A stretch of DNA of 64,000 bases from Schizochytrium sp. TIO01 (GCA_004764695.1 SMSO01000007.1:620001-684000), one strand, 5' to 3'; counted from the first letter of the stretch, positions 1,811 to 24,260 are shown. The notes: generated by a model from the letters alone, not told the origin. Numbers and translations are program-made.

Positions 1811-4691
1811 GGCAGGGGTTTTAAGAGAGGGACGTGACGTGACGTTTTGGACGAACTTTGGTACAAATTCCCAAGCATGAGAAACTTGAGCCCAAACTTC
1901 AAGCCGAGAGGGACATCATTTATTGAGTGCTCTCTCCTTTTTCTTTTATTCTTTTCAATCTTAAAATTTGAGGAAATAATCAATACACCACAATAACAAT
2001 TAGATCTGAAGCGAGGCAGCTGCTGTCATGGAGATGAATCCACGTTCTCGCGTTCAATTAAAAGGCAAGCTCGTTATATCAAATATGAGCTTAACTTACA
2101 TAGTCTGTTTTAGTAGCTAAGCTGTTGCTACCTTATGAAACAGTATTCAGACATACGAATAGCTGGTCTTCAACAGAGTAGTCTACCAGTATGTGTAAGG
2201 CTGAAACAGCTAGTAGTGATGCACCTGCTTTGCGATGATAAAGGAACTATGTAGCAGAAATTAGTAGGTGCGTACTTAGTAGCCTAAAATAAAGAACTTC
2301 CTACTACCCCTAAATTGCTATTTATACAAAGAGGTGCGAGAAGCAGAAAGAACTAATAATGGCAAACTACGCCGCCGAGAAGTGCTTTTCAAAAGTTGCA
2401 TCCATATTTTGATCTACTTTGTTTGATTAACTGTAGAACAATACCTAATATCGATTTTAGATGATAAAATTCTAGATCTGAATGTTGATAAAATTGGCCC
2501 TTGCCTTTAAAGCAGGGTGCTCAGGGAAAATGCGTGGCAAGGAATCAATAATAATTACTTTCCATTGCAATAAATTCATTCCACGTTTTGCTTTCTTTAT
2601 TTATTTTACATCTAGGATTATGCAACATAACAAAAGTCTCTGCAAAACTCCAGTCAATAAAAAGAAATTCAAGCAGGTTCTCTTCCCAAACAAAGATGAA
2701 TAAAAAGAGTAATCACTTAGTAATATAGTGTACCCTAATAAACTACTTTTTCAATTTGTGGTCGTGGTGTTTGCCCGCTTCCTCTAGCCATGCGCGATTT
2801 GCAATCTTTAATGCACTCACGGCCATTAGGTACCTACCTCCAAATAAGAAATTATCAATTACGATGCTCCTAGGTCATATTAATTTCATGAAGTTGTCTG
2901 TGAGTGAATATGTTTCTCTTAATTGTGTGCCCCTTGTGGGTGAGACCTTTAAGCCTAACCAACGAGACGGAATTTGTAGTTTTGTGAAGAAAACCATCTA
3001 CGAGTCCGGTCGACTTGTAGACTAAGTTGGCTGTAGTGACAAGGTAGTTAGTTACCTCATGGCTTCTCACAACAAATATTACTATTTTTTTCATACGTTC
3101 AAAATGCGATAGCGACCGAGGGATGTGCGTTAAAGAAATCAGAGCATGCATCCTCAAATCGATTTAGTCAATATACTATTGCCTTGATAGTAGTATAATA
3201 TAATATATATTATATTATATACATGCTGGTACCACATAGTTGAGTTAGTAGCTCCTTTTTTCTTCTTTTTCTTTTTTTTCTCTTCGTTGGCATTTCTAAT
3301 GGTGTGATTACAACAGTTGGTTATTTTTTCTTTTTTGCGTTGTTGGTGGCATCCAATTCATTTATTTAATGCGATTAGGCCCTTAAGTTACCTCTAAATA
3401 ATAAAACATTAAAATAAAACATTAACTAATGGGATTATCTGACTAGGGATAGTACTAGTGACATACTCCAAAGTAAACAAAATTTATTTAAAGTATAAAC
3501 CTTGATAATGAGAGTACACACGAACAATGAGCCTTATATATTATCTTTTGGATTTCTGTAATTTTCTGTCTTTTCTTTTTTGTTTTATTGCCCCTCCACC
3601 CTATAGTACTAAATATTTGGAGGCTAATATCATGCTCAAAGTATTTCTATTTTGAAATAAATGCGAACTTGAAAATTAGAATGATAAAGCACCATTGGAT
3701 ACTCCTATTGAAGTGTTTTCTACTGATTGGTGGTAGTGTGCACACGAGCAGATCTGGCGTGCTGTGGAAACTGAACTGCCTCTCACCACTCAGACACCGG
3801 CTGCTCCTGAGTTTTTGGGCTTTTGCACAAACACCTATTTTTTAATTTCAAAATTGATCTCAAAAAGTAGTTTCCGGTTCCATTTTGCAAAAGCGTTATC
3901 AAAACCTAAAGTTTCGAGAAACTTTCTCGGGTTCAACTCAAAGAAGTTGGGCATTACATTGGTTTTTGAACCAGGCATTGTGCGATGTTTAACAATTATT
4001 TCGGTTGCACGACGCACTTGGACCGAAGAATAAAGTTAAAAGGCTTAAGGGGGGCGAGGATAGAAGGCCCACCTCAAGTTTATGGTTTGTTTCTGTTATT
4101 GTCTGTTTCTTATCATCTTCCTTTGATTTTCTTTTCTTTATTGAAGTTGTACGTACTATCATTTTCAGACCAACATACTTGAGCCCGGTACCTACCACAT
4201 AACTCACAAGCCGTTCACGAAGTTCACGCAAGGCCATCACTCTGTATATATAAATTTATAAACACAATATTTACAATGTGCAAACAAATTAATCAAAAGA
4301 GTATCTAATGGCCGAGATGTGCTCTCCCTCTGCTCCGATGAAAATACCCGAGCAAAGCTAGCTAGCTAGTTATTTGATCTAGGTATCTAAAATTTACAAT
4401 AACCGATATTTGGGTTAGTGGAACAACCCTTTCTCCATTTTGAGGCAATGAAAGTGAGCTTCCAGCATCCAAGTTGAGAAGAGCAAAAGGCAAAGGACGC
4501 AACAAAGGAAGTTTACCTAATTGGAAGGTTGTAGCAGTCAAGCGTTTTAATGTATATGTTTCAAACAACGAAGGTTTCTCTATTTTCTTTTCAAATAACA
4601 AGAAATAAGGTTAGAAACTTCAATCGTTTTATCTCCGAAAGAAAACGTAAAATTGCTTTTTGGTTTTTTCCTTTAAAGTATGTTGAAGATG

Positions 4692-13979: not shown

Positions 13980-16670
13980 ATGCAGGGACATGGTTCAAGG
14001 GCTCGTACGACTGGACTCTCGTCGTCATCTTCAAGGGCAAGCACAGGGCTATCGTCAACCACAACTTCAATTACAAATTCATCATCGTCCTCATCATCAA
14101 CTAACAATTCTTCATCTGGAGTAAAGGTAGAAACTTCTCAAGTGTCACAAATAAATGAAGAAGGCCCAGTTCTTCAGATCGAGACCCCTGCTTGGCAACC
14201 ATCCGATGTTTTCGCTCCAAATAACATTCTCCATATCAAAGAGAAACGACCCTTGGGAGCAACTCGTGGGAACACAACTGTCCCTCAAGCACCAGAACTC
14301 ACAGTTCGAATTCTAGCTCAAGGTGTTGGTTGTGAGAAGAATTTGGCAGTTCGTGCTACATTATGGAGCTGTGGACCTATCTCGCAACAAGCCCGCTTTC
14401 TTGCTAAAAAGGGCTTGTCCAAACTCACTCCCAAAAATGGTGAACATTTTCGCACTCTTCGAGGTAAGACCACCATTGAATGTCAGCAAAATATTGCCCT
14501 CTTTGGCAGTGTCACAGAGGATGGTTATCGCACAGCTGTCTTACGTTGTGTTTTCTCACGTGCTGCACGGATTCCCTGTAAACGGAATTACATTACACTC
14601 AAACTAGAGTGTGTCCGTGTAATCGCACAGCAAGATAGTTCTCCAAATCAAAACTCCCTCAGTAGTCGAGGAACAACAAATACACCATCTGCCCGGCAGG
14701 AAAGCCCCCGTACTAGGGTGCGGGGAGGGCTCCCACCAACCCCACCTAGATCAGCAACAAGACCACCAAACGGAGATGCAGACGCCGCAACCTTAAACGG
14801 AGGAGCGCTTATAAGTGCTTCTTCCTCCTCCTCCTCCTCTTCTTCCTCTGTGCCCGTTCAACGAGGCCCTTCTCAACAGTTTCAACAACTCTCCAACACA
14901 ACGCAGCCAGTCTCTTCCCATGTACATCCTGCACGGGTTGAGTTGAGTGAGGAAGAGGAAGATGATGACGAAGATGATGACGAAGAGGAAGAGGAAGATG
15001 AGGAGAGCGAACACTCCAGCGATCCCCGGGGTTCTTCCCTTTCCCAAGACTCCCTTGCCAAATCCTCGGCAAGTAGTAAAACCACCACAGCGGAGATCGT
15101 TCATGTCGCTGAGGTTCCTGAAATTCTCACCTGTCGCATTTCAATCTCAGAAAAGGCCATGTGCCCTCGTGCATGCGATGCGCGTCGCAAGCAGGACCCC
15201 ACACGCGCCCGCATGCAACATCAATTGCAAGAACAACAGCAACAACAGGGATATGTTGCACAAGTGGTGCAGCAGCAGCAGCAGCAACAACAACAACAAC
15301 AACGACAGCAAAATCTAATTTTGCAACATCTTGGTCTACCTGGCACAAGCCAGGTTGTTCAGCCTTCAAGAAACACCGGCGCTACTGGTGCCTCTGCAAT
15401 GAGCTCACAAGGCCTCGATATGGCTTTCCTGCAAAGGATGCAAGCTGCTGCGGCTGCGGCTGCGGCTGCCACAGGAGCTACACCACAGTATTATCCTTCA
15501 TTACACACGGAACCTGCTTTACAAGCTTCCTCCGGCATTAACTCTTTAGAGCAACCTCAAGTAAAGCAAGAGATTCAGCAATATCTTCAGTATCTCAGTG
15601 GTCACACCAATGGCAATAATGAGATCCATCACATTAACAGAGATAATCATACTGAGTGGCTCCAGCAACTTTATGCCGCAAATAGCTCTTCCTCCATCAT
15701 TCCACAACAGCATCTTCAACAGCCTTATGGAAACGAGGACCATCTTCTTCGAACTCTGCATGCAACAGCTGCAGCTGCAGTGGACCCAACAACAAGAGAT
15801 ATCATTCTGCAAGAATTATGTGCAAGACTACAGAACAACCCAGAAGCCATGGCTGGATTTCTTGCTTCTTCTCTCCCTGCATCCTCATCCTCATCAGCTT
15901 CGTCTCAGCTTCCCCCTCTCTTATCACAACAACAGAGACAGCGACAACTGCAGTTATTGCAGCACAATCAAGGAGATATTCCCCCCTTTTCTCGAACTGA
16001 TGCCCCACATCTCTTGTCTTCTCAGCAGATGAATTCCTCGAGCTCAAATCTCACAACAGAGCAACCCTTATTCTCCACAAGAGAGGATAGCTGGCCATTA
16101 CCCTTTCCAAATCGAGAAAGAGCATCTTCACTGGTACAGTCTGCAGCGTCGTCAACTTCATCACCTCTGCAAAACCTGCTGCCGCAAAACTCACCAGTGA
16201 ACCCCACAAACGTCGCAGCTTCGTTATTCTCTTCTCAAAACGCTCGCTCCGCTTTAGGCTCGTCTTCTTCGTCGTCGTCATCAGCCTCGTCATCTCCGGT
16301 GCTTGAGGCCTTGGCATCAGCGCCCTCCACACGGATTCCATTTGGCAACACGCAAAATTCTTCGCTAGCAGGAAACCCTGCATTACGACTGTACCATTCA
16401 GACGCCAACCAATACACCCAGACAGGTGCTTTACAGCAGTTGATGATGTCCCAGGATAACGAGCAACAGCTTGGCCAGCAACAGGTCCAAAGCTTCCAGG
16501 CAACGCCTGATTTCCAAAACCTTTGGTCCAGGCGATCAACCATCCACCAGCAGCAACAGCAACAGAATATGTTTAATACTAGCAACAGCAGCAGCGGTAA
16601 CAATGGTGGTCTTCACAACCGGAACAATGATTACAACAACACATTTCCCCGCGCACCCCACCAACGCTGA
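13980..16670 (+). CDS. 896-aa Ser/Gln-rich protein of unknown function, with a globular N-terminal region and long polyQ/polyS/acidic tracts; possibly a transcriptional regulator
   Basis: 2.7-kb uninterrupted ATG-initiated ORF, GC-richer than its flanks, with low-complexity tracts kept in frame. No family motif recognised. Confidence 0.85.
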   Translation: MQGHGSRARTTGLSSSSSRASTGLSSTTTSITNSSSSSSSTNNSSSGVKVETSQVSQINEEGPVLQIETPAWQPSDVFAPNNILHIKEKRPLGATRGNTTVPQAPELTVRILAQGVGCEKNLAVRATLWSCGPISQQARFLAKKGLSKLTPKNGEHFRTLRGKTTIECQQNIALFGSVTEDGYRTAVLRCVFSRAARIPCKRNYITLKLECVRVIAQQDSSPNQNSLSSRGTTNTPSARQESPRTRVRGGLPPTPPRSATRPPNGDADAATLNGGALISASSSSSSSSSSVPVQRGPSQQFQQLSNTTQPVSSHVHPARVELSEEEEDDDEDDDEEEEEDEESEHSSDPRGSSLSQDSLAKSSASSKTTTAEIVHVAEVPEILTCRISISEKAMCPRACDARRKQDPTRARMQHQLQEQQQQQGYVAQVVQQQQQQQQQQQRQQNLILQHLGLPGTSQVVQPSRNTGATGASAMSSQGLDMAFLQRMQAAAAAAAAATGATPQYYPSLHTEPALQASSGINSLEQPQVKQEIQQYLQYLSGHTNGNNEIHHINRDNHTEWLQQLYAANSSSSIIPQQHLQQPYGNEDHLLRTLHATAAAAVDPTTRDIILQELCARLQNNPEAMAGFLASSLPASSSSSASSQLPPLLSQQQRQRQLQLLQHNQGDIPPFSRTDAPHLLSSQQMNSSSSNLTTEQPLFSTREDSWPLPFPNRERASSLVQSAASSTSSPLQNLLPQNSPVNPTNVAASLFSSQNARSALGSSSSSSSSASSSPVLEALASAPSTRIPFGNTQNSSLAGNPALRLYHSDANQYTQTGALQQLMMSQDNEQQLGQQQVQSFQATPDFQNLWSRRSTIHQQQQQQNMFNTSNSSSGNNGGLHNRNNDYNNTFPRAPHQR

Positions 16671-17600
16671 TAATACAAAACGCATCTATTATATTAATGC
16701 GCAAAAATTCGTCAATCCTGCTTCTGTGTTTGATGCAAACACAACCGATGTTGATATAATTTGTCTTGGCTGTGAAAAGCAAGCATTCGCTACTTTTGTA
16801 CAAATGCTTTCTTTTTCTATTCTCAACCCTCCTTAAGAAATGATTCAGCCTTGAGGCATTGTTTTATCAAGGTCATGAAGGATAACATGATCACCATTCT
16901 CCTGTATGCTTTTCGTTCATCTATTCATGATATTTGCAAAATTGAAACTTGTTATGGTAATTCCGTTTTTAGACTCTTTTTTAAACATGGCTTCCTTTCC
17001 TTCCTCTTGTCTAATCGCCGTCCAAACTGAAATTTATTATCTACCACTTCGTCTCACGTTAGCCAGTACGACTAGATCCTAGAATCAGTGCGCCAAGGTA
17101 GCTAGCTATCACTACTTTCTTTCCAGTTTGCAATAGTTTACATCTCTGGAAAAATACGATTCAAAGCGGAGAGGTTGTAAATTCGCAGGCCAGCTTTTCT
17201 CCTTGAGATTATATTTTGAGAATGTATACCTCCTTTACTACTTGGATGTAAACTTATAGATTTATTTCTCTCCAATGAAATAATAGAAACAGCACCATAA
17301 ACCATGCTCTACTGCCACCTAATACCTAATGGTAGGTTTACACAGAATGGAAACCCAACATATATAGAACAACTTAAACTTTAAATTCAGTTTGAACAGA
17401 TACGTCAAGTGGTCTTGAGCCCAGCTCCCAGTTTCCTCAATCTCTCATACACATCACTCTGATAGCAGCGAAGGTCTGCACTTATGAAAAGGTTAGAACT
17501 TACAAGACCTCCACACGGTAGTGTCTATTCCATATTAATGATAGGCCTATATATTATAGTTATTCAGATCTTGGTTAAAAAATAGAGGTTCGATAAGAAA

Positions 17601-18246
17601 ATGGCATGGCCAAGGAACCACCAATCTCCAAACACTGCATGTGAAGCAAACCTTCAATACAAGCCAGCAAAGCACTTCAACCAGAAGTTTGGAATTCAGC
17701 GAGTGTCCTTCGGGGGCCTTCCCGGAGGCAATTGCATGTACGCAAGTGGCAACGTTGAGCATCCCTATGACTGAGGTTTCTTCCGGCGCCCGCGAGCTAT
17801 GCAGCACTGGCCGAACAATTATCTACGCCAGAGTGTCCTCCCGCCAAGAGAAGAGAAAGCTCCAAACGCCAGATTGCCAGACGTCCCCGCCGCCTACAAA
17901 GACATCGGTAGAGGGATTGACTTGAAAGGCCGGACTTGAAAGACCCTACTGGACACATATGACAACGGCGGATCTCGCCGAGCTGTGGTCAGGTACCGCG
18001 ATTGACTTCTACAAATCGCTGTCGACCTCCTTAAGGATCTTGTTTTCTAAAAAAATGCACAACTCGCGGCCAAGATGCACACGCCGGGGACTTCGACACC
18101 TTCAAAAAACTTGCCATCACCGTATTTGGACCGTCGCATTACGGAAAAGTAGCAGCGCAAAATAGACGGCAATGACCCAACGGGAAGAAGAGAGCGCGCG
18201 TGGAGGCACACAAGACGACCAAGAAGGAGTATCTAGTTTGTGCTAA
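17601..18246 (+). pseudogene. tnpA: IS607 TnpA pseudogene (MerR-like HTH + serine recombinase)
   Basis: From ATG 17601: ...YKPAKHFNQKFGIQRVSFGGLPGGNCMY (HTH remnant). Then IIYARVSSRQEK (catalytic Ser codon 17836-38), KRQI, KDIGRGIDLKGRT*KTLLD...AVVRYRD*L (DIGSG and RDRL motifs, from 17898) and LAITVFGPSHYGKVAAQNRR (C-terminal helix). Several frameshifts and stops. Confidence 0.9.
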
Positions 18247-19430
18247 AAAGGTTCGTGTCTATCCAACGAGAAATGGTTGGCGTCGCCAGAAATGCTTACA
18301 ACATTGGTGTTGCCTTTCAGTATGATTAGTCCAAAGGTAAGGACGAAGTCATGGCCCTGCATCAAGATACATGCTTCAGGAAGGGCCCTAACACAAACTA
18401 AGTCCTGAATGACGAAGGAGGTAATCCTAAAATGTTCGGCGATAGCAATGGAGAAAAGAAAGGATTGTGTCTTAAAGAAGGCTTACGCGCGCCTGGTTGG
18501 GTCTTCGAAGTACCACAAGCTGAGCGTAATTCAGGATTCGTTGATTTTTTCAAAACTTTCGATACTGACCAAGCCCAAAATGACAAAACAGCCGCCACCA
18601 AAAAAAAGGCACTCGCTCTTTTAACTGCAAAACGGGATAAAGCCCAGAGGTTGGGTCGCGCGATTTTTTCTCAAAAGCTTTCGTACCTTTATGGAAAAGT
18701 TTCCCGACCAAGCAATTAATTCAAACGAATCGCCTGGGTCATGTTCGCCTCTGCTTTTTGCATGAATGAAAGGTACGGTCTGAAGAGGAGGCACCCGATG
18801 TGCACCATAGTACCTTTGTCTTGGACCCAGGAGTACGCTCATGGCAGACTATATGACGACGCTGATGGCCAAGCCATTGAAGGAGAGACAAAAAGGAATA
18901 AAAAACATACTCTTTCTCTGTCACTGTGCTAACATAAATTATGTCGTCCAAGGAAAACTGGCTCAAAAGAAAAGAGATAACCTGCCTCAAGACGTGCATA
19001 CCTATGACACTCCTCAAAATTAAGAACAAGACCACCGAGATTCACCGCAAGCTTGGACGTTGCTTCCATATGGAAACTACCGTGCTATCATGTTGCCTAG
19101 ATTTGAAACCACTTGGGTGGTGAACAAGTTAACAAGTTAACGCGATGGGTTAAAAGCAAGTCAATTCGAATAATATTCGTTGAGACCTCTTCAGCTTCTT
19201 CCCGTCCAGCGCTCATCCACAAAGCCGGGGTTTTCCACTGATGTAAACTTGTGATTTGCCGAGAGGGTTATGCTTCAAAAACATGCAATAAACGCGGGTA
19301 TCTACAAGCTTAGAAACCGATTGTTTTCAAATGCCCAAAATGCAAACACGTAGCCGATCGACACCGGAGGCATGCTTTCGCGCTACCTACCCAAGGACAT
19401 GATTGTAAAAAAAATACGATCAAAAACTAA
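18176..19430 (+). pseudogene. tnpB: Fanzor2 / IS607 TnpB RNA-guided endonuclease pseudogene
   Basis: Motifs in collinear order across frames: KKVRVYPT (18245), GVARNAYN, WVFEVPQAERNSGFVDFFK, TNRLGHVRLC, RuvC-I FVLDPGVRSWQT (D 18824-26), KIKNKTTEIHRKLG, NYRAIMLPRFET (P 19096), LIHKA, KLVICREGYASKTCNKRG (E 19263-65), VFKCPKCKHVADR (19323-61), SRYL. Many stops, frameshifts and short deletions. Confidence 0.92.
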
Positions 19431-19540
19431 CCTGCGATTGGGACTTAGACCTAACCCCCCAAGCACCGTATTAGGAAATGCGGGTTTTGCAAATGTTACA
19501 AGTTATGTACTAAGCGTCTGGTAATAATACAACACTTTGG
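19430..19540 (+). ncRNA. Putative omegaRNA (right-end RNA) scaffold of the Fanzor2 element plus flank-derived guide
   Basis: Lies directly after the nuclease ORF. Hairpins ttggg-acttaga-cctaa (19438-54) and ccgtatt-agga-aatgcgg (19466-83). ttagac (19445-50) can pair with gtctgg (19516-21) as a pseudoknot. Structure judged by eye. Confidence 0.5.
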
Positions 19541-22500
19541 AGTAGTCTATTCTGGCAGTGAGCATCTACCTGCTCATAGGGGAGTGAGTATCTCGTCGAG
19601 TAAAATGTACCTATCTACTAGTAGTAGACAGGCAGGTATGTATGTATGCAGCACATCTGCTATGGTGACGTGAGCTTTAAAAAACACGCGGGGGGAGAGA
19701 GGGCATAGGAGAAAACAGGCGAAAATCTGGGGGGGGGGGGGATCTACTTCTCCTCCCCAAAACATTGTGTTGGCGAATTTTCTGATTTGCAATTTATAAG
19801 ATGAATAGCTTTAACTGTGGGATGTGACATGACATTTAGCTTTAAATCTAAAACTCTTTATGAATTGTGTTACTGGTTTGATCAAGAACATACAGTGATG
19901 ACACTCATCTACTTCCACTGTAAATATTCAATTCTACTACCACTGGGTCTCCTCACAAGGTATATACAATAGTGTTTTATAGTGGCACATTAAACTGGAT
20001 TGTATTTGTACATTTAAAATCGCATCGAAACCAATACCAAACTGTTCTCAACAATTTGCGAACCTTGACAAACCTACCTTGGTTTCTGCGCTTGGACAAC
20101 CGAAATGACGCCATATTAAACAAGTGAATGAAAGGCATTTTGAATAGAAAAGTATTTCCTGTTTTTCAGATATTGGGTTTAAAGACTTACTTGCCTCATA
20201 AATGAATCATCAATCAAGGAAAGCAAGCCACTTTGAGCATATTCTCAAAGCTTTTGGGGACGAAGTAGGAGAAATGGTATCAAGTAAATTTCTCGATAAC
20301 AGCTAGTACAGAATATTTATTTAACCCATCCAAAATATCATTTTGATGTTTCTGGTTTTGTTGTTTTAATACTTGTCAGTATTTTGATTAAAGAAACACC
20401 CCCGAGAATATTGATTCCTCTATAAATGGTCAGTTGATTCACAGCAGCTTCTGAAATTCAGTTGATATGAATACGATGTAGTCCTAGCCTCATTCTGAGC
20501 TTTATCTACAATTTAAGTAGCTGGAGCATCACCAGTATAGATCCTCGCATAGAGTTCGCATAGAGTTCGGAAGATGAAAGATCACATTTAGAAAACATTA
20601 AAATAAGATGAACTAAGGCTTGTCTGCAACGTTCTTGTGAATATTTTGGAGTCCGCAGACTAGCTGTAAGTGAAATATATAGAATGAAAGTTTGGAGGCC
20701 TATATGTATTGGCCTATCTTGTGGATGTGCTGATTGAATATCAACCGCAAAGTCTAAAAAGTCCACAATTTGAGAAGTGCGACTATTTTGCGTGTGAGCT
20801 CTACATAGCAAAATTTTCAGTTATGTGAAGTAAACTGAGATAGACCTCAGTGGTTTTGCTCGAACATCGCATGTTTGAGTAGACTAGCCTGGGTTTAAGA
20901 GGCCAGAATACCACATGTTTGACTCTTGGTTGGTTTAGAACAGAACGTTATTCTAAAACGTTCCAAATAATCTCCATACGAACTCATAATCGTTCTAAGC
21001 GCGAGGTTTTTGCTCAGTTGGAGAAGAGACTTTTGTCAGCATGGAGCCCAGCCCAGGTATGCAGCCCACCTACGAGTACCTCACTGTCTTGTAGCAGGCA
21101 TAATTCTAAATGGCCTACAACAAGTGATGATTATTTGACCTTTCAAAGTTCTATTGGGCCTATCTTCTGTTTCATTTTTAAGTTATTTCATGCATTCATC
21201 CAAATGATAAGTAAATTAGGCCTGATTCTTAGCTTTTTATTATATACTTTATCTTAATCAAAATAAGAGACCTCTGACTAGTAGCAATGAAGATGAAGTG
21301 GGAGTGACTACTCACATTCCTATGCCTGCCCCTCCTTCCCATATTACCCTCATTTTGGTTTTTCAGGCATAGCTCTCTAGCCCTAGGCAGAAAGCTAGGT
21401 CCACCTACCACCCACTCACTACTGGGTAGCCTATGGGGTCTCCACATCCCCGCTGCCTAGTAGAACCTCTACCTCCTACCATAGCACTGTTTCCTCTGCA
21501 TCTCTCCCCTTCGCGTGATCAACAGACGCGGCTTTGAGGTCGGAGTCCGGTGCACCATCGATTTTTTCCCGGCCCTCTCGAGGCCCCCCCCTTCCCCACT
21601 GCGAAAGTTGCCATGGACTCCCCCCTCTGCTCCGCACCTTATGGGGCCGCCTCCCTCACAGCCCTCCCCAGTGACGCGCCCCTCACATGCCACTGCAATG
21701 GAGAAAAGGACGACTCTCCTCCCAGCCCCACTGCCCTCTCTGAGGGACAGTGGGAAAGGGAGGTGTCGCAGCGAAGACTCGGGGGCGCTCGTACAAGACC
21801 GACAGGGCGACACTGGGTCGGTTGCGAAGAGGCTGCGCCGAGTCCGGCAAATCGGAAAGGAGGGAGGCAGACCCGGAATCAAGGGAGGGCCGCGCGCCTT
21901 ATTATTAGAGGGACGAGGAGGCGGCCGGCGGCGGAGAGGAACGCCTGGAACAGGTGGAACACGTAGAACTCCCGGAACGGATAGAACGCACGAGGCTGGA
22001 AACGAGACACGGAGTAGTCGTGGACTACGTCTGACTTACTAAGTCAATTGATCTTCTGGGCGGGCACTGCCGTCTTCCTTCCTGAGGCCCACCCACCCTC
22101 AATTGCTTGCTTGCTTGCTTGCTTGCTTGGTTCTTCTCTGCTGGACTGGGTTGCACGTAGGTACAGGAGGCGGATCAGCACACAGCCAATAGAGCTGACT
22201 CGCCAGCGTCAACAGCAAAAGGGTTGTCTGCTCTTCATCGTTCGTGCTTGTTTGGCATATATATATAATCATCTCCTTCCCTCTCTCTGCTAACTAATTA
22301 GGTTGGAACTCGTTGCAGGTTTTGTTGCTAGTTCTGCAGCAAAACAGGCTAAGGACTAGCGGAGGATATTGGAGTGCTACTCGGAGGAGGAGTCAGGGAG
22401 CGAGACTAAGCACCTGCTCACAACAACAAACTACCACACCATCACAACGAGAACAGCAACTAGTACCTCTACTTCGACGATAGAAAGGAGCAGGTCGATC

Positions 22501-22553: not shown

Positions 22554-24260
22554 ATGAACGTAGTGCAGGCGACAGTTGGTCAAGTGCACCAGAGTTTAGC
22601 AGCTGCAGGCCAGGGCGAACACGATCCCCACGGCTCAAGTGGAAGAGGTCTCATGCAGGGTAACTTGCCCCAAGATGTGAACGGAAACGTGGTTCTACAC
22701 AACTCCAACGGCAGCTCCGCTGTCAGCAATAACGCCAACAATGGCCAGGACCATCGGCGCTTTGGGCGCAGGTGCTCTTTCCCTAACTGTGAGAAAGCAT
22801 CGCAGGGACCCACGCACTACTGCGTCTCCCACGGAGGTGGCAAGAAGTGCAGTAGGCCTAATTGCGACAAGGTTGACAAGGGTGGCGGATACTGCGTCTC
22901 CCACGGAGGAGGCAAGCGATGCCAGGCTCCGGACTGTGACAGAGCTGCCAAAGGGCCCACGGCACTCTGTATCGCCCACGGAGGAGGCTCCAGGTGCAAG
23001 GTGAACAGATGCGCAAAGCTCGATGCAGGACGTGGCTTTTGTATTGCTCATGGAGGAGGCAAGCGCTGTAGCGCAGAGAACTGCAACAAGAGTGCCCAGG
23101 GTGGTACTGATATGTGCAAGGCTCACGGAGGAGGACGCAGATGTAAGACTGATGGATGCTCGAAGAGGGATATGGGCGGCGGTCTTTGCATTGCTCACGG
23201 AGGTGGCAAGAGATGCGATGAAGAAGGTTGCGAGAAGAGCGCTCAGGGAGGTACCACGCGGTGCGTTCGCCACGGAGGTGGCAAGAGGTGCCGTGAACCA
23301 GATTGCACCAAGTCTGCAGCAGGATCCACGAACTACTGTATTCGTCATGGAGGAGGTCGTCGATGCAAAGAAGCGGGGTGCAGTAAGCATGCAACTGGAG
23401 GTGGCTATTGCGCAGAGCACGGAGGAGGGCGCCGATGCACCATATCAGGATGCCTAAATAACGCACTCTATGGAGGTGCCAAAGGTCTTTGCTACGCTCA
23501 CGGCGGCGGCAAGCGATGCCGTGAACCTAATTGCAACAAAAGTCCTCGCGTGCCCACAGAATTCTGTGTCTCGCATGGAGGTGGAATCCGATGCAAAGCA
23601 GATAACTGTACGTCCTTGGCGCGTGCTGGGGGGCTTTGTGGCACACATGGAGGCCGGAAGCGCTGTCGTTCAGAGAACTGTGACAAGTTCGCCAAGTATG
23701 GAGGCCTTTGTAAAGCCCACGGCGGTGGCAAACGCTGTCGCCACCCTGGATGCGTTCGCTATGAGAAGATCAATGGCTTTTGCCAGCTTCACACGAACTT
23801 GGCATCATCGAGTATGCCACCTAACACTGCACCGAAGTGTGATGACCCTGGGTGCGATCGCCCCGCTCTCGATAATGACGATTTCTGCCGAATTCACAGT
23901 AGTCGTGTCCTCCAACAGGCTCCTCCTCCGCCGCCGATGAACAACATGGTAATGCAAAACGATATGAACAACGCTCATTTGGACTATGGAGAAGCAGAAG
24001 ATGATGAAATTGATAACAAGCTCCGCGAGCTTCAGCGTCAAATGAGCATTCTGCAGGCGCAACGCGAGGAGAAGATCAAGCGCCGCCGGTTGAGCGCACC
24101 CCACAACGGTGTAGCACAAGTCCCACAAGCGTCTCATGGATGGGGTCAGCACCAATTTGCAACGCAATCTGGTGCCCCCCCTCAAGCTGTCTTCCAGCAA
24201 AATCAAATCCCTGATGGTTACCAGTACTCGAACCAGTCCGGCTCTGGATCTGGTATCTGA
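22554..24260 (+). CDS. 568-aa protein with 14 tandem + 1 separate WRKY19-like zinc fingers and a C-terminal coiled-coil/Q-rich tail
   Basis: Repeat unit C-x4-C-x9/10-C-x2-H-GGG, e.g. KRCSAENCNKSAQGGTDMCKAHGGG. There is no WRKYGQK motif, so this is not a true WRKY domain protein. Confidence 0.93.
   Translation: MNVVQATVGQVHQSLAAAGQGEHDPHGSSGRGLMQGNLPQDVNGNVVLHNSNGSSAVSNNANNGQDHRRFGRRCSFPNCEKASQGPTHYCVSHGGGKKCSRPNCDKVDKGGGYCVSHGGGKRCQAPDCDRAAKGPTALCIAHGGGSRCKVNRCAKLDAGRGFCIAHGGGKRCSAENCNKSAQGGTDMCKAHGGGRRCKTDGCSKRDMGGGLCIAHGGGKRCDEEGCEKSAQGGTTRCVRHGGGKRCREPDCTKSAAGSTNYCIRHGGGRRCKEAGCSKHATGGGYCAEHGGGRRCTISGCLNNALYGGAKGLCYAHGGGKRCREPNCNKSPRVPTEFCVSHGGGIRCKADNCTSLARAGGLCGTHGGRKRCRSENCDKFAKYGGLCKAHGGGKRCRHPGCVRYEKINGFCQLHTNLASSSMPPNTAPKCDDPGCDRPALDNDDFCRIHSSRVLQQAPPPPPMNNMVMQNDMNNAHLDYGEAEDDEIDNKLRELQRQMSILQAQREEKIKRRRLSAPHNGVAQVPQASHGWGQHQFATQSGAPPQAVFQQNQIPDGYQYSNQSGSGSGI

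Follow-up and report, generated by a model that had tools for sequence, protein, structure and literature searches.

Remains of an IS607-type Fanzor2 transposon and its intact sister copies in a thraustochytrid nuclear genome

The window analysed here, a 64,000-nucleotide stretch of the Schizochytrium sp. TIO01 genome (SMSO01000007.1:620001-684000), almost certainly carries at ~17482-19517 an IS607-type transposon copy, now dead and without function, whose genes used to specify TnpA and a Fanzor2 RNA-guided nuclease and which arose in an old burst of copying and has since decayed neutrally. The fossil itself carries little weight; it documents an old IS607-Fanzor2 wave in a thraustochytrid genome and points to a young multi-copy family with natural intact copies in the same genome. 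This family offers a culturable eukaryotic host for the study of Fanzor2 in its own transposon, and its intact copies are further natural Fanzor2 for nuclease work, making reconstruction unnecessary.

Detection and extent of the fossil copy

A tblastn search of the window with the two proteins encoded by L014, an intact sister copy, gave collinear matches for both, with E values of 4e-29 for TnpA and 3e-55 for TnpB. The collinear TnpA and TnpB motifs listed in the initial annotation were all recovered (15/15) between 17.6 and 19.4 kb on the + strand, correctly ordered and distributed over three reading frames, and its statement that no long ORF survives in the region holds, the longest being 121 aa. 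The motif given as RDxL lies at 17997, with a stop codon in the x position; the sister copy encodes Arg there.

We also searched the window with profile HMMs made from 31 giant-virus loci only, excluding sequence of the genome itself. These gave seven Fanzor2 fragments (17926-19310) and two TnpA fragments (17560-18002), the matches ascending in DNA and profile coordinates alike, and no other match at E<1 among the 3107 fragments of the window. Collinear matches to TnpA and TnpB across 17.6-19.4 kb, on which the initial annotation had let its reading depend, were thus obtained with both tblastn and the virus-only profiles. Pfam models, likewise proposed there as a check, detected nothing relevant on the broken fossil: ten stop-to-stop pieces gave no relevant match because they are too short, and the fossil is absent from the genome-wide six-frame Pfam match lists (TNB, Resolvase). 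The features of the region are as follows.

13980-16670: upstream ORF, 896 aa, low-complexity with poly-Q and poly-S runs; no Pfam domain
~17482-19517, + strand: whole fossil IS607-Fanzor2 element, 2036 bp (living family 2205 bp); ends by alignment with old and young copies
17482-17600, + strand: left end and 5′ leader; left-end alignment
17601-18175, + strand: tnpA remnant (MerR-type HTH and serine-recombinase catalytic domain); tblastn E 4e-29
17704-18232, + strand: Fanzor2 N-terminal extension remnant, in the +1 frame over tnpA; alternative-frame tblastn and virus profile
18233-19404, + strand: Fanzor2/TnpB core remnant (HTH_OrfB, WED/REC, RuvC, Zn ribbon); tblastn E 3e-55
19405-19517, + strand: non-coding 3′ tail and right end; ends CTAAGCG
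YARVSS 17824, DIGRG 17901, RD(stop)L 17997, + strand: TnpA motifs; motif search
TVF 18119, HYG 18137, AAQNRR 18152, + strand: TnpA motifs, C-terminal set; motif search
KVRVYPT 18248, ARNAYN 18285, EVP 18507, LDPGVR 18821, + strand: TnpB motifs, first part; motif search
EIHRKL 19037, LPRFET 19093, EGYASKTC 19263, FKCPKC 19326, ADR 19353, + strand: TnpB motifs, second part; motif search
18821-18838, + strand: RuvC-I motif LDPGVR; its Asp is the equivalent of ApmFz2 D324 (triad from PMC11832414)
19263-19286, + strand: EGYASKTC; rearranged RuvC-II glutamate (ApmFz2 E467), then the first Zn-ribbon Cys
19353-19361, + strand: ADR of RuvC-III; 11-nt deletion directly after it
~19651-21053: other old repeat, 134 bp right of the fossil; at least 50 genomic copies, 68-82% identity
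22554-24260: next right-hand ORF, zinc-finger repeat protein

The alternative-frame tblastn match at 17704-18232 corresponds to residues 5-190 of the sister long ORF, and within this stretch the giant-virus Fanzor2 profile matches at 17926-18162 with E 3e-4. Six collinear virus-profile matches fall within the core remnant. At its left end the fossil begins TTATGAAAAGGTTAGAAC, the young-family counterpart being (G)TATGACAAAAACCGTTAAAA. The ends set by alignment lie a few bases from the boundaries first proposed, 17473-19521.

Decay, surroundings and alternative readings

Global alignment of the fossil with the intact copy (L014:1141-3345) gave 67.2% identity over 1998 aligned nt with 30 indels, about 23 of them frame-breaking. 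Thirteen stops stand at homologous codons, five in tnpA and eight in the TnpB core; counted over the long frame, there are ten. The HTH region of tnpA has lost 33 nt, and the 11-nt deletion after ADR (reference position 3177, window position ~19359) removes the RuvC-III catalytic Asp, the equivalent of ApmFz2 D501. What survives includes the RuvC-I Asp in LDPGVR and the Glu of EGYASKTC, together with YARVSS, DIGRG and AAQNRR; LPRFET does not contain the catalytic Glu. We found in the sequence of the fossil no argument for residual function.

A copy that is dead as a gene might nevertheless have been co-opted, for instance to supply a guide-like RNA or to regulate neighbouring genes. The 3′ tail is indeed the best-conserved part of the family, kept in at least 40 copies at 76-87% (right ends) vs. 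~67% for coding DNA, and the similarity of the fossil tail is still recognisable. Folding of this tail relative to shuffled sequences, however, gave a z of -0.71, compared with -2.82 for the 3′ 216 nt of a young copy; its main stem is disrupted, and no partner nuclease gene is left in cis. We consider co-option very unlikely. The fossil tail (19405-19517) is the decayed counterpart of a presumed omegaRNA scaffold.

On its left the dead copy borders a flank that is single-copy in the genome, with the upstream ORF ending 812 bp short of it. On the right, the description of the element as lying between two host genes holds less well, the immediate neighbour being the old repeat at ~19651-21053 and the host ORF starting only at 22554. 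This repeat contains no long ORF, and the initial 310 bp are found on their own as well, in many identically scoring copies, a pattern that an LTR or a composite element could explain. Elsewhere the window holds ordinary eukaryotic nuclear genes (FancD2, a kinase, an MFS protein and a mitochondrial carrier), and the nearest named homologue of the carrier is from the thraustochytrid Hondaea fermentalgiana (84%).

These surroundings bear on the idea that the fossil stems from an integrated giant virus, which would agree with the presence of family relatives (25-37% identity) in IMG/VR on 74 contigs of giant viruses, one of them a 344,691-bp record. Yet the homologous segment measures just 2 kb, with ends like those of the dispersed family, and copies are found on many contigs. 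The single-copy left flank, the cellular repeat on the right and the ordinary eukaryotic neighbours also argue against an endogenous viral element, as does the absence of viral hallmark genes among window ORFs of at least 300 aa, and we judge such an origin extremely improbable. Chance resemblance, or breaks introduced into an intact gene by assembly errors, can be given a negligible probability and is refuted by tblastn, the L014 alignment and the virus-only profiles: direct Pfam matches on the pieces are lacking, but the E value of 3e-55 and the collinear profile matches speak against chance, while 33% nucleotide divergence and 13 substitution-type stops cannot be indel errors.

Old, intermediate and young copies of the family

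A six-frame Pfam search of the whole genome (64 Mb, 37 contigs) returned 36 TNB and 29 Resolvase matches, many of them in long open frames. The fossil has no close relative in the genome: its best matches, at 67-68% in local alignment, are to other full-length copies of the old type. In multiple alignment the six old full-length copies are 72-76% alike and roughly equidistant. This star-like pattern fits a single old burst followed by ~0.16 substitutions per site per copy, a reading that presupposes that the old copies were alike at insertion.

The young family comprises about 20 copies of a 2.2-kb element (2205 bp in L014) on many contigs, with 94-99% identity. In nine of them both ORFs are uninterrupted, with TNB and Resolvase matches paired; intact sister copies had been envisaged in the initial annotation. 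The two-gene family which, according to the same annotation, the genome once hosted is real, but it does not belong only to the past: judging from the likeness of its copies, the IS607-Fanzor2 family is young, probably remains active and has a putative current mobility.

Other copies fall between or beside these groups. L050 (C6:719900-722600), which lies on the same contig as the window and 36 kb past its end, is a degraded copy of an intermediate lineage with 89-93% identity to the young family, and L048 and L049 are of intermediate type as well (85-91%); family activity therefore extended over a long time. Among the young copies, at least five (C5:1374200, C36:1883650, C31:5077397, C32:1870798 and C4:212566) share a TAA inside tnpA while keeping a Fanzor2 frame of 661-665 aa, and look like one or more transposase-null lineages that multiplied with the nuclease gene preserved. 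In the old lineage, many short deletion derivatives have 390-470 bp of the 5′ part joined to 375 bp of the 3′ part plus the right-end tail; they share breakpoints and occur, for example, at L036 (C7:537050-538110) and about 12 further places. They form a non-autonomous family in which both ends and the presumed omegaRNA region are kept.

The intact copy L014:1141-3345 (2205 bp) encodes a 232-aa TnpA and a long downstream ORF. In TnpA, Pfam places a Resolvase domain at residues 83-216 (E 5e-20) and a weak MerR/HTH_17 match at 28-66 (E 0.01), and in the long ORF HTH_OrfB_IS605, OrfB_IS605 and Cas12f1-like TNB, the core giving E values of 2e-13 for PF07282 and 2e-9 for PF12323. The order, tnpA followed by tnpB on the same strand, is the same in the sisters and the fossil. 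We found no terminal inverted repeats, the left 60 nt scoring 12 against the reverse complement of the right 60 nt (shuffles, mean 8.3, maximum 16), and no target site duplications in the flanks of 12 young copies. Most young copies show AG at both junctions, which would fit the core dinucleotide of a serine recombinase, and left flanks ending mostly in CAG, which hints at a candidate TAM. In one young copy, L032 (C33:4612360-4616334), AAGAAACAAAT abuts both the left end and the right end; other copies differ.

From known IS607/TnpB and Fanzor2 biology we infer the following life cycle. TnpA of a live element would excise it and paste it at a core of 2 bp, and neither inverted repeats nor target duplications would be involved. 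Transcription of the 3′ tail would yield an omegaRNA with a guide that extends into the right flank, Fanzor2 with this omegaRNA would cut sites adjoining a short motif, and the cutting may help the element to persist. In this scheme the omegaRNA, the TAM, the nuclease activity and the current mobility are all putative. Rfam gave no match on the fossil and one young copy, and RNAalifold found no consensus structure among 36 right ends of mostly dead copies, an outcome to be expected if dead copies lose their pairs at random; this result counts neither for nor against an omegaRNA. Compensatory pairs that separate the young and old lineages number only two.

The sister nuclease and its overlap with tnpA

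The assignment of the pseudogenised element to the IS607 type with a Fanzor2, as originally proposed, is borne out by the sisters. By sequence, the best solved relative of their nuclease is mimivirus L79, i.e., ApmFz2 (PDB 9b0l; phmmer E 2e-18). In the alignment with 9b0l, residues D416, E564 and D601 of the family nuclease fall on D324, E467 and D501, which form the catalytic triad of ApmFz2 (PMC11832414). Among 39 homologues E564 and D601 are invariant, and the canonical Glu position (E515 in PKFETS) varies, being occupied by Q, G, A, K or N. An invariant E564 and a variable canonical site together mark the rearranged active site by which Fanzor and pro-Fanzor proteins are characterised, with the RuvC-II glutamate displaced towards the C terminus to a place directly ahead of the Zn ribbon.

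An AlphaFold model of the sister nuclease (pLDDT 77) has residues 1-88 disordered and residues 89-190 structured. Its best fold match is to 9b0l, with a Foldseek E of 1e-18 and a Z of 22.4 over 434 residues, model 88-618 aligning to chain 53-518; the fold Z against ISDra2 TnpB was 18-19. Fold matches to TnpB and Cas12f begin only at model residue 191-193. The Fanzor2-specific N-terminal extension is described as consisting of a disordered NLS region, RuvC-R and a thumb (PMC11832414). The sequence and model comparisons thus support a predicted nuclease of Fanzor2 type with the Fanzor2-specific N-terminal domain. Complete ORFs of 601 and 617 aa with 92-94% identity to the family nuclease are found in an MMETSP transcriptome, and the long ORF is therefore transcribed in some related organism.

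The closest known system, ApmFz2 (L79, 9b0l; ISvMimi IS607), shares with the sisters the catalytic triad including the rearranged Glu and an N-terminal extension (chain 53-130) onto which model residues 88-190 align. It, too, is paired with an IS607 TnpA, and its ORF is followed by a conserved non-coding tail (PMC10530073). ApmFz2 and the sister nuclease are only ~18% identical, however, and the N-terminus measures ~190 aa in the sisters vs. 130 aa in ApmFz2. They also differ in host, a stramenopile nuclear genome for the sisters (with the window copy dead) and a giant virus for ApmFz2, and in flank motif, which is GGG for ApmFz2 and putatively CAG-like for the sisters. IS607-type Fanzor2 elements have been known since Bao and Jurka in 2013 (ISvAR158_1, ISvNY2A_1, ACa-1/2, CRv-1 and a Phytophthora Fanzor2; PMC3627910). 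Like the sisters, those elements have two genes, an IS607-type serine recombinase and a Fanzor2, and lack TIRs and TSDs, and stramenopiles were already among their hosts (PMC3627910). That 2013 description does not include a genome in which a multi-copy young family stands beside a large fossil record, and the searchable papers and supplements make no mention of thraustochytrids.

Bacterial IS607 TnpB proteins of the pro-Fanzor or TnpB2 clade, e.g., ISXfa1, share the gene pair of the sisters and their rearranged RuvC glutamate (PMC11832414; PMC10711439). Bacterial TnpB is without the N-terminal extension that overlaps tnpA in the sisters, because its solved structures match the model only from residue 191-193 on. 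Fanzor1 (SpuFz1, 8gkh) is likewise a eukaryotic TnpB-derived RNA-guided nuclease, but its fold match to the sister model is much weaker (Foldseek E 1e-5 vs. 1e-18 for 9b0l), and it accompanies other transposon superfamilies, not IS607 (PMC3627910).

The most interesting by-product of the fossil analysis is dual coding over tnpA. The analysis confirms that the Fanzor2-specific N-terminal domain is read in the +1 frame over tnpA, in giant-virus relatives too. We see roughly even chances for the wider reading, in which this domain has no DNA of its own upstream of the TnpB core but shares almost all of tnpA, so that one stretch gives two proteins, in a nested and previously undescribed arrangement kept both in giant viruses and in the nuclear transposon of a thraustochytrid; no description of the overlap was found in the literature searched, which is absence of evidence only. 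If true and new, the overlap would tie the origin of a eukaryote-specific Fanzor2 domain to a transposase gene, and if true it would constrain the evolution and expression of both genes.

In L014 (1247-1953) tnpA is nested within the Fanzor2 open frame, and residues 89-190, which make up the structured N-terminal domain, are encoded wholly inside it, in the +1 frame. We identified 74 distinct giant-virus loci with family relatives in IMG/VR, 47 of which have a TnpA match, and in about 40 of these 47 the Fanzor2 frame is open across 430-725 nt of tnpA, always in +1. When each of 32 TnpA genes was recoded synonymously 2000 times, the +1 frame was open in none of the recodings. At three Trp positions of the second frame, TGG is present in 29/32, 26/32 and 27/32 elements, which forces a G into the wobble position of TnpA Leu or Val codons; at these sites the 32 elements have TTG (10) or CTG (19), GTG (26) and GTG (22), whereas G occupies only 14% of TnpA wobble positions overall. 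Wobble identity is 0.40 in TnpA vs. 0.32 in the non-overlapping core. Among variants shared within the young family, 10 of 20 are synonymous in tnpA vs. 25% expected, and synonymous changes in the Fanzor2 frame are not enriched. The young-family variants thus reflect selection on tnpA, with a second-frame signal that is not clear, while the signal across lineages is strong.
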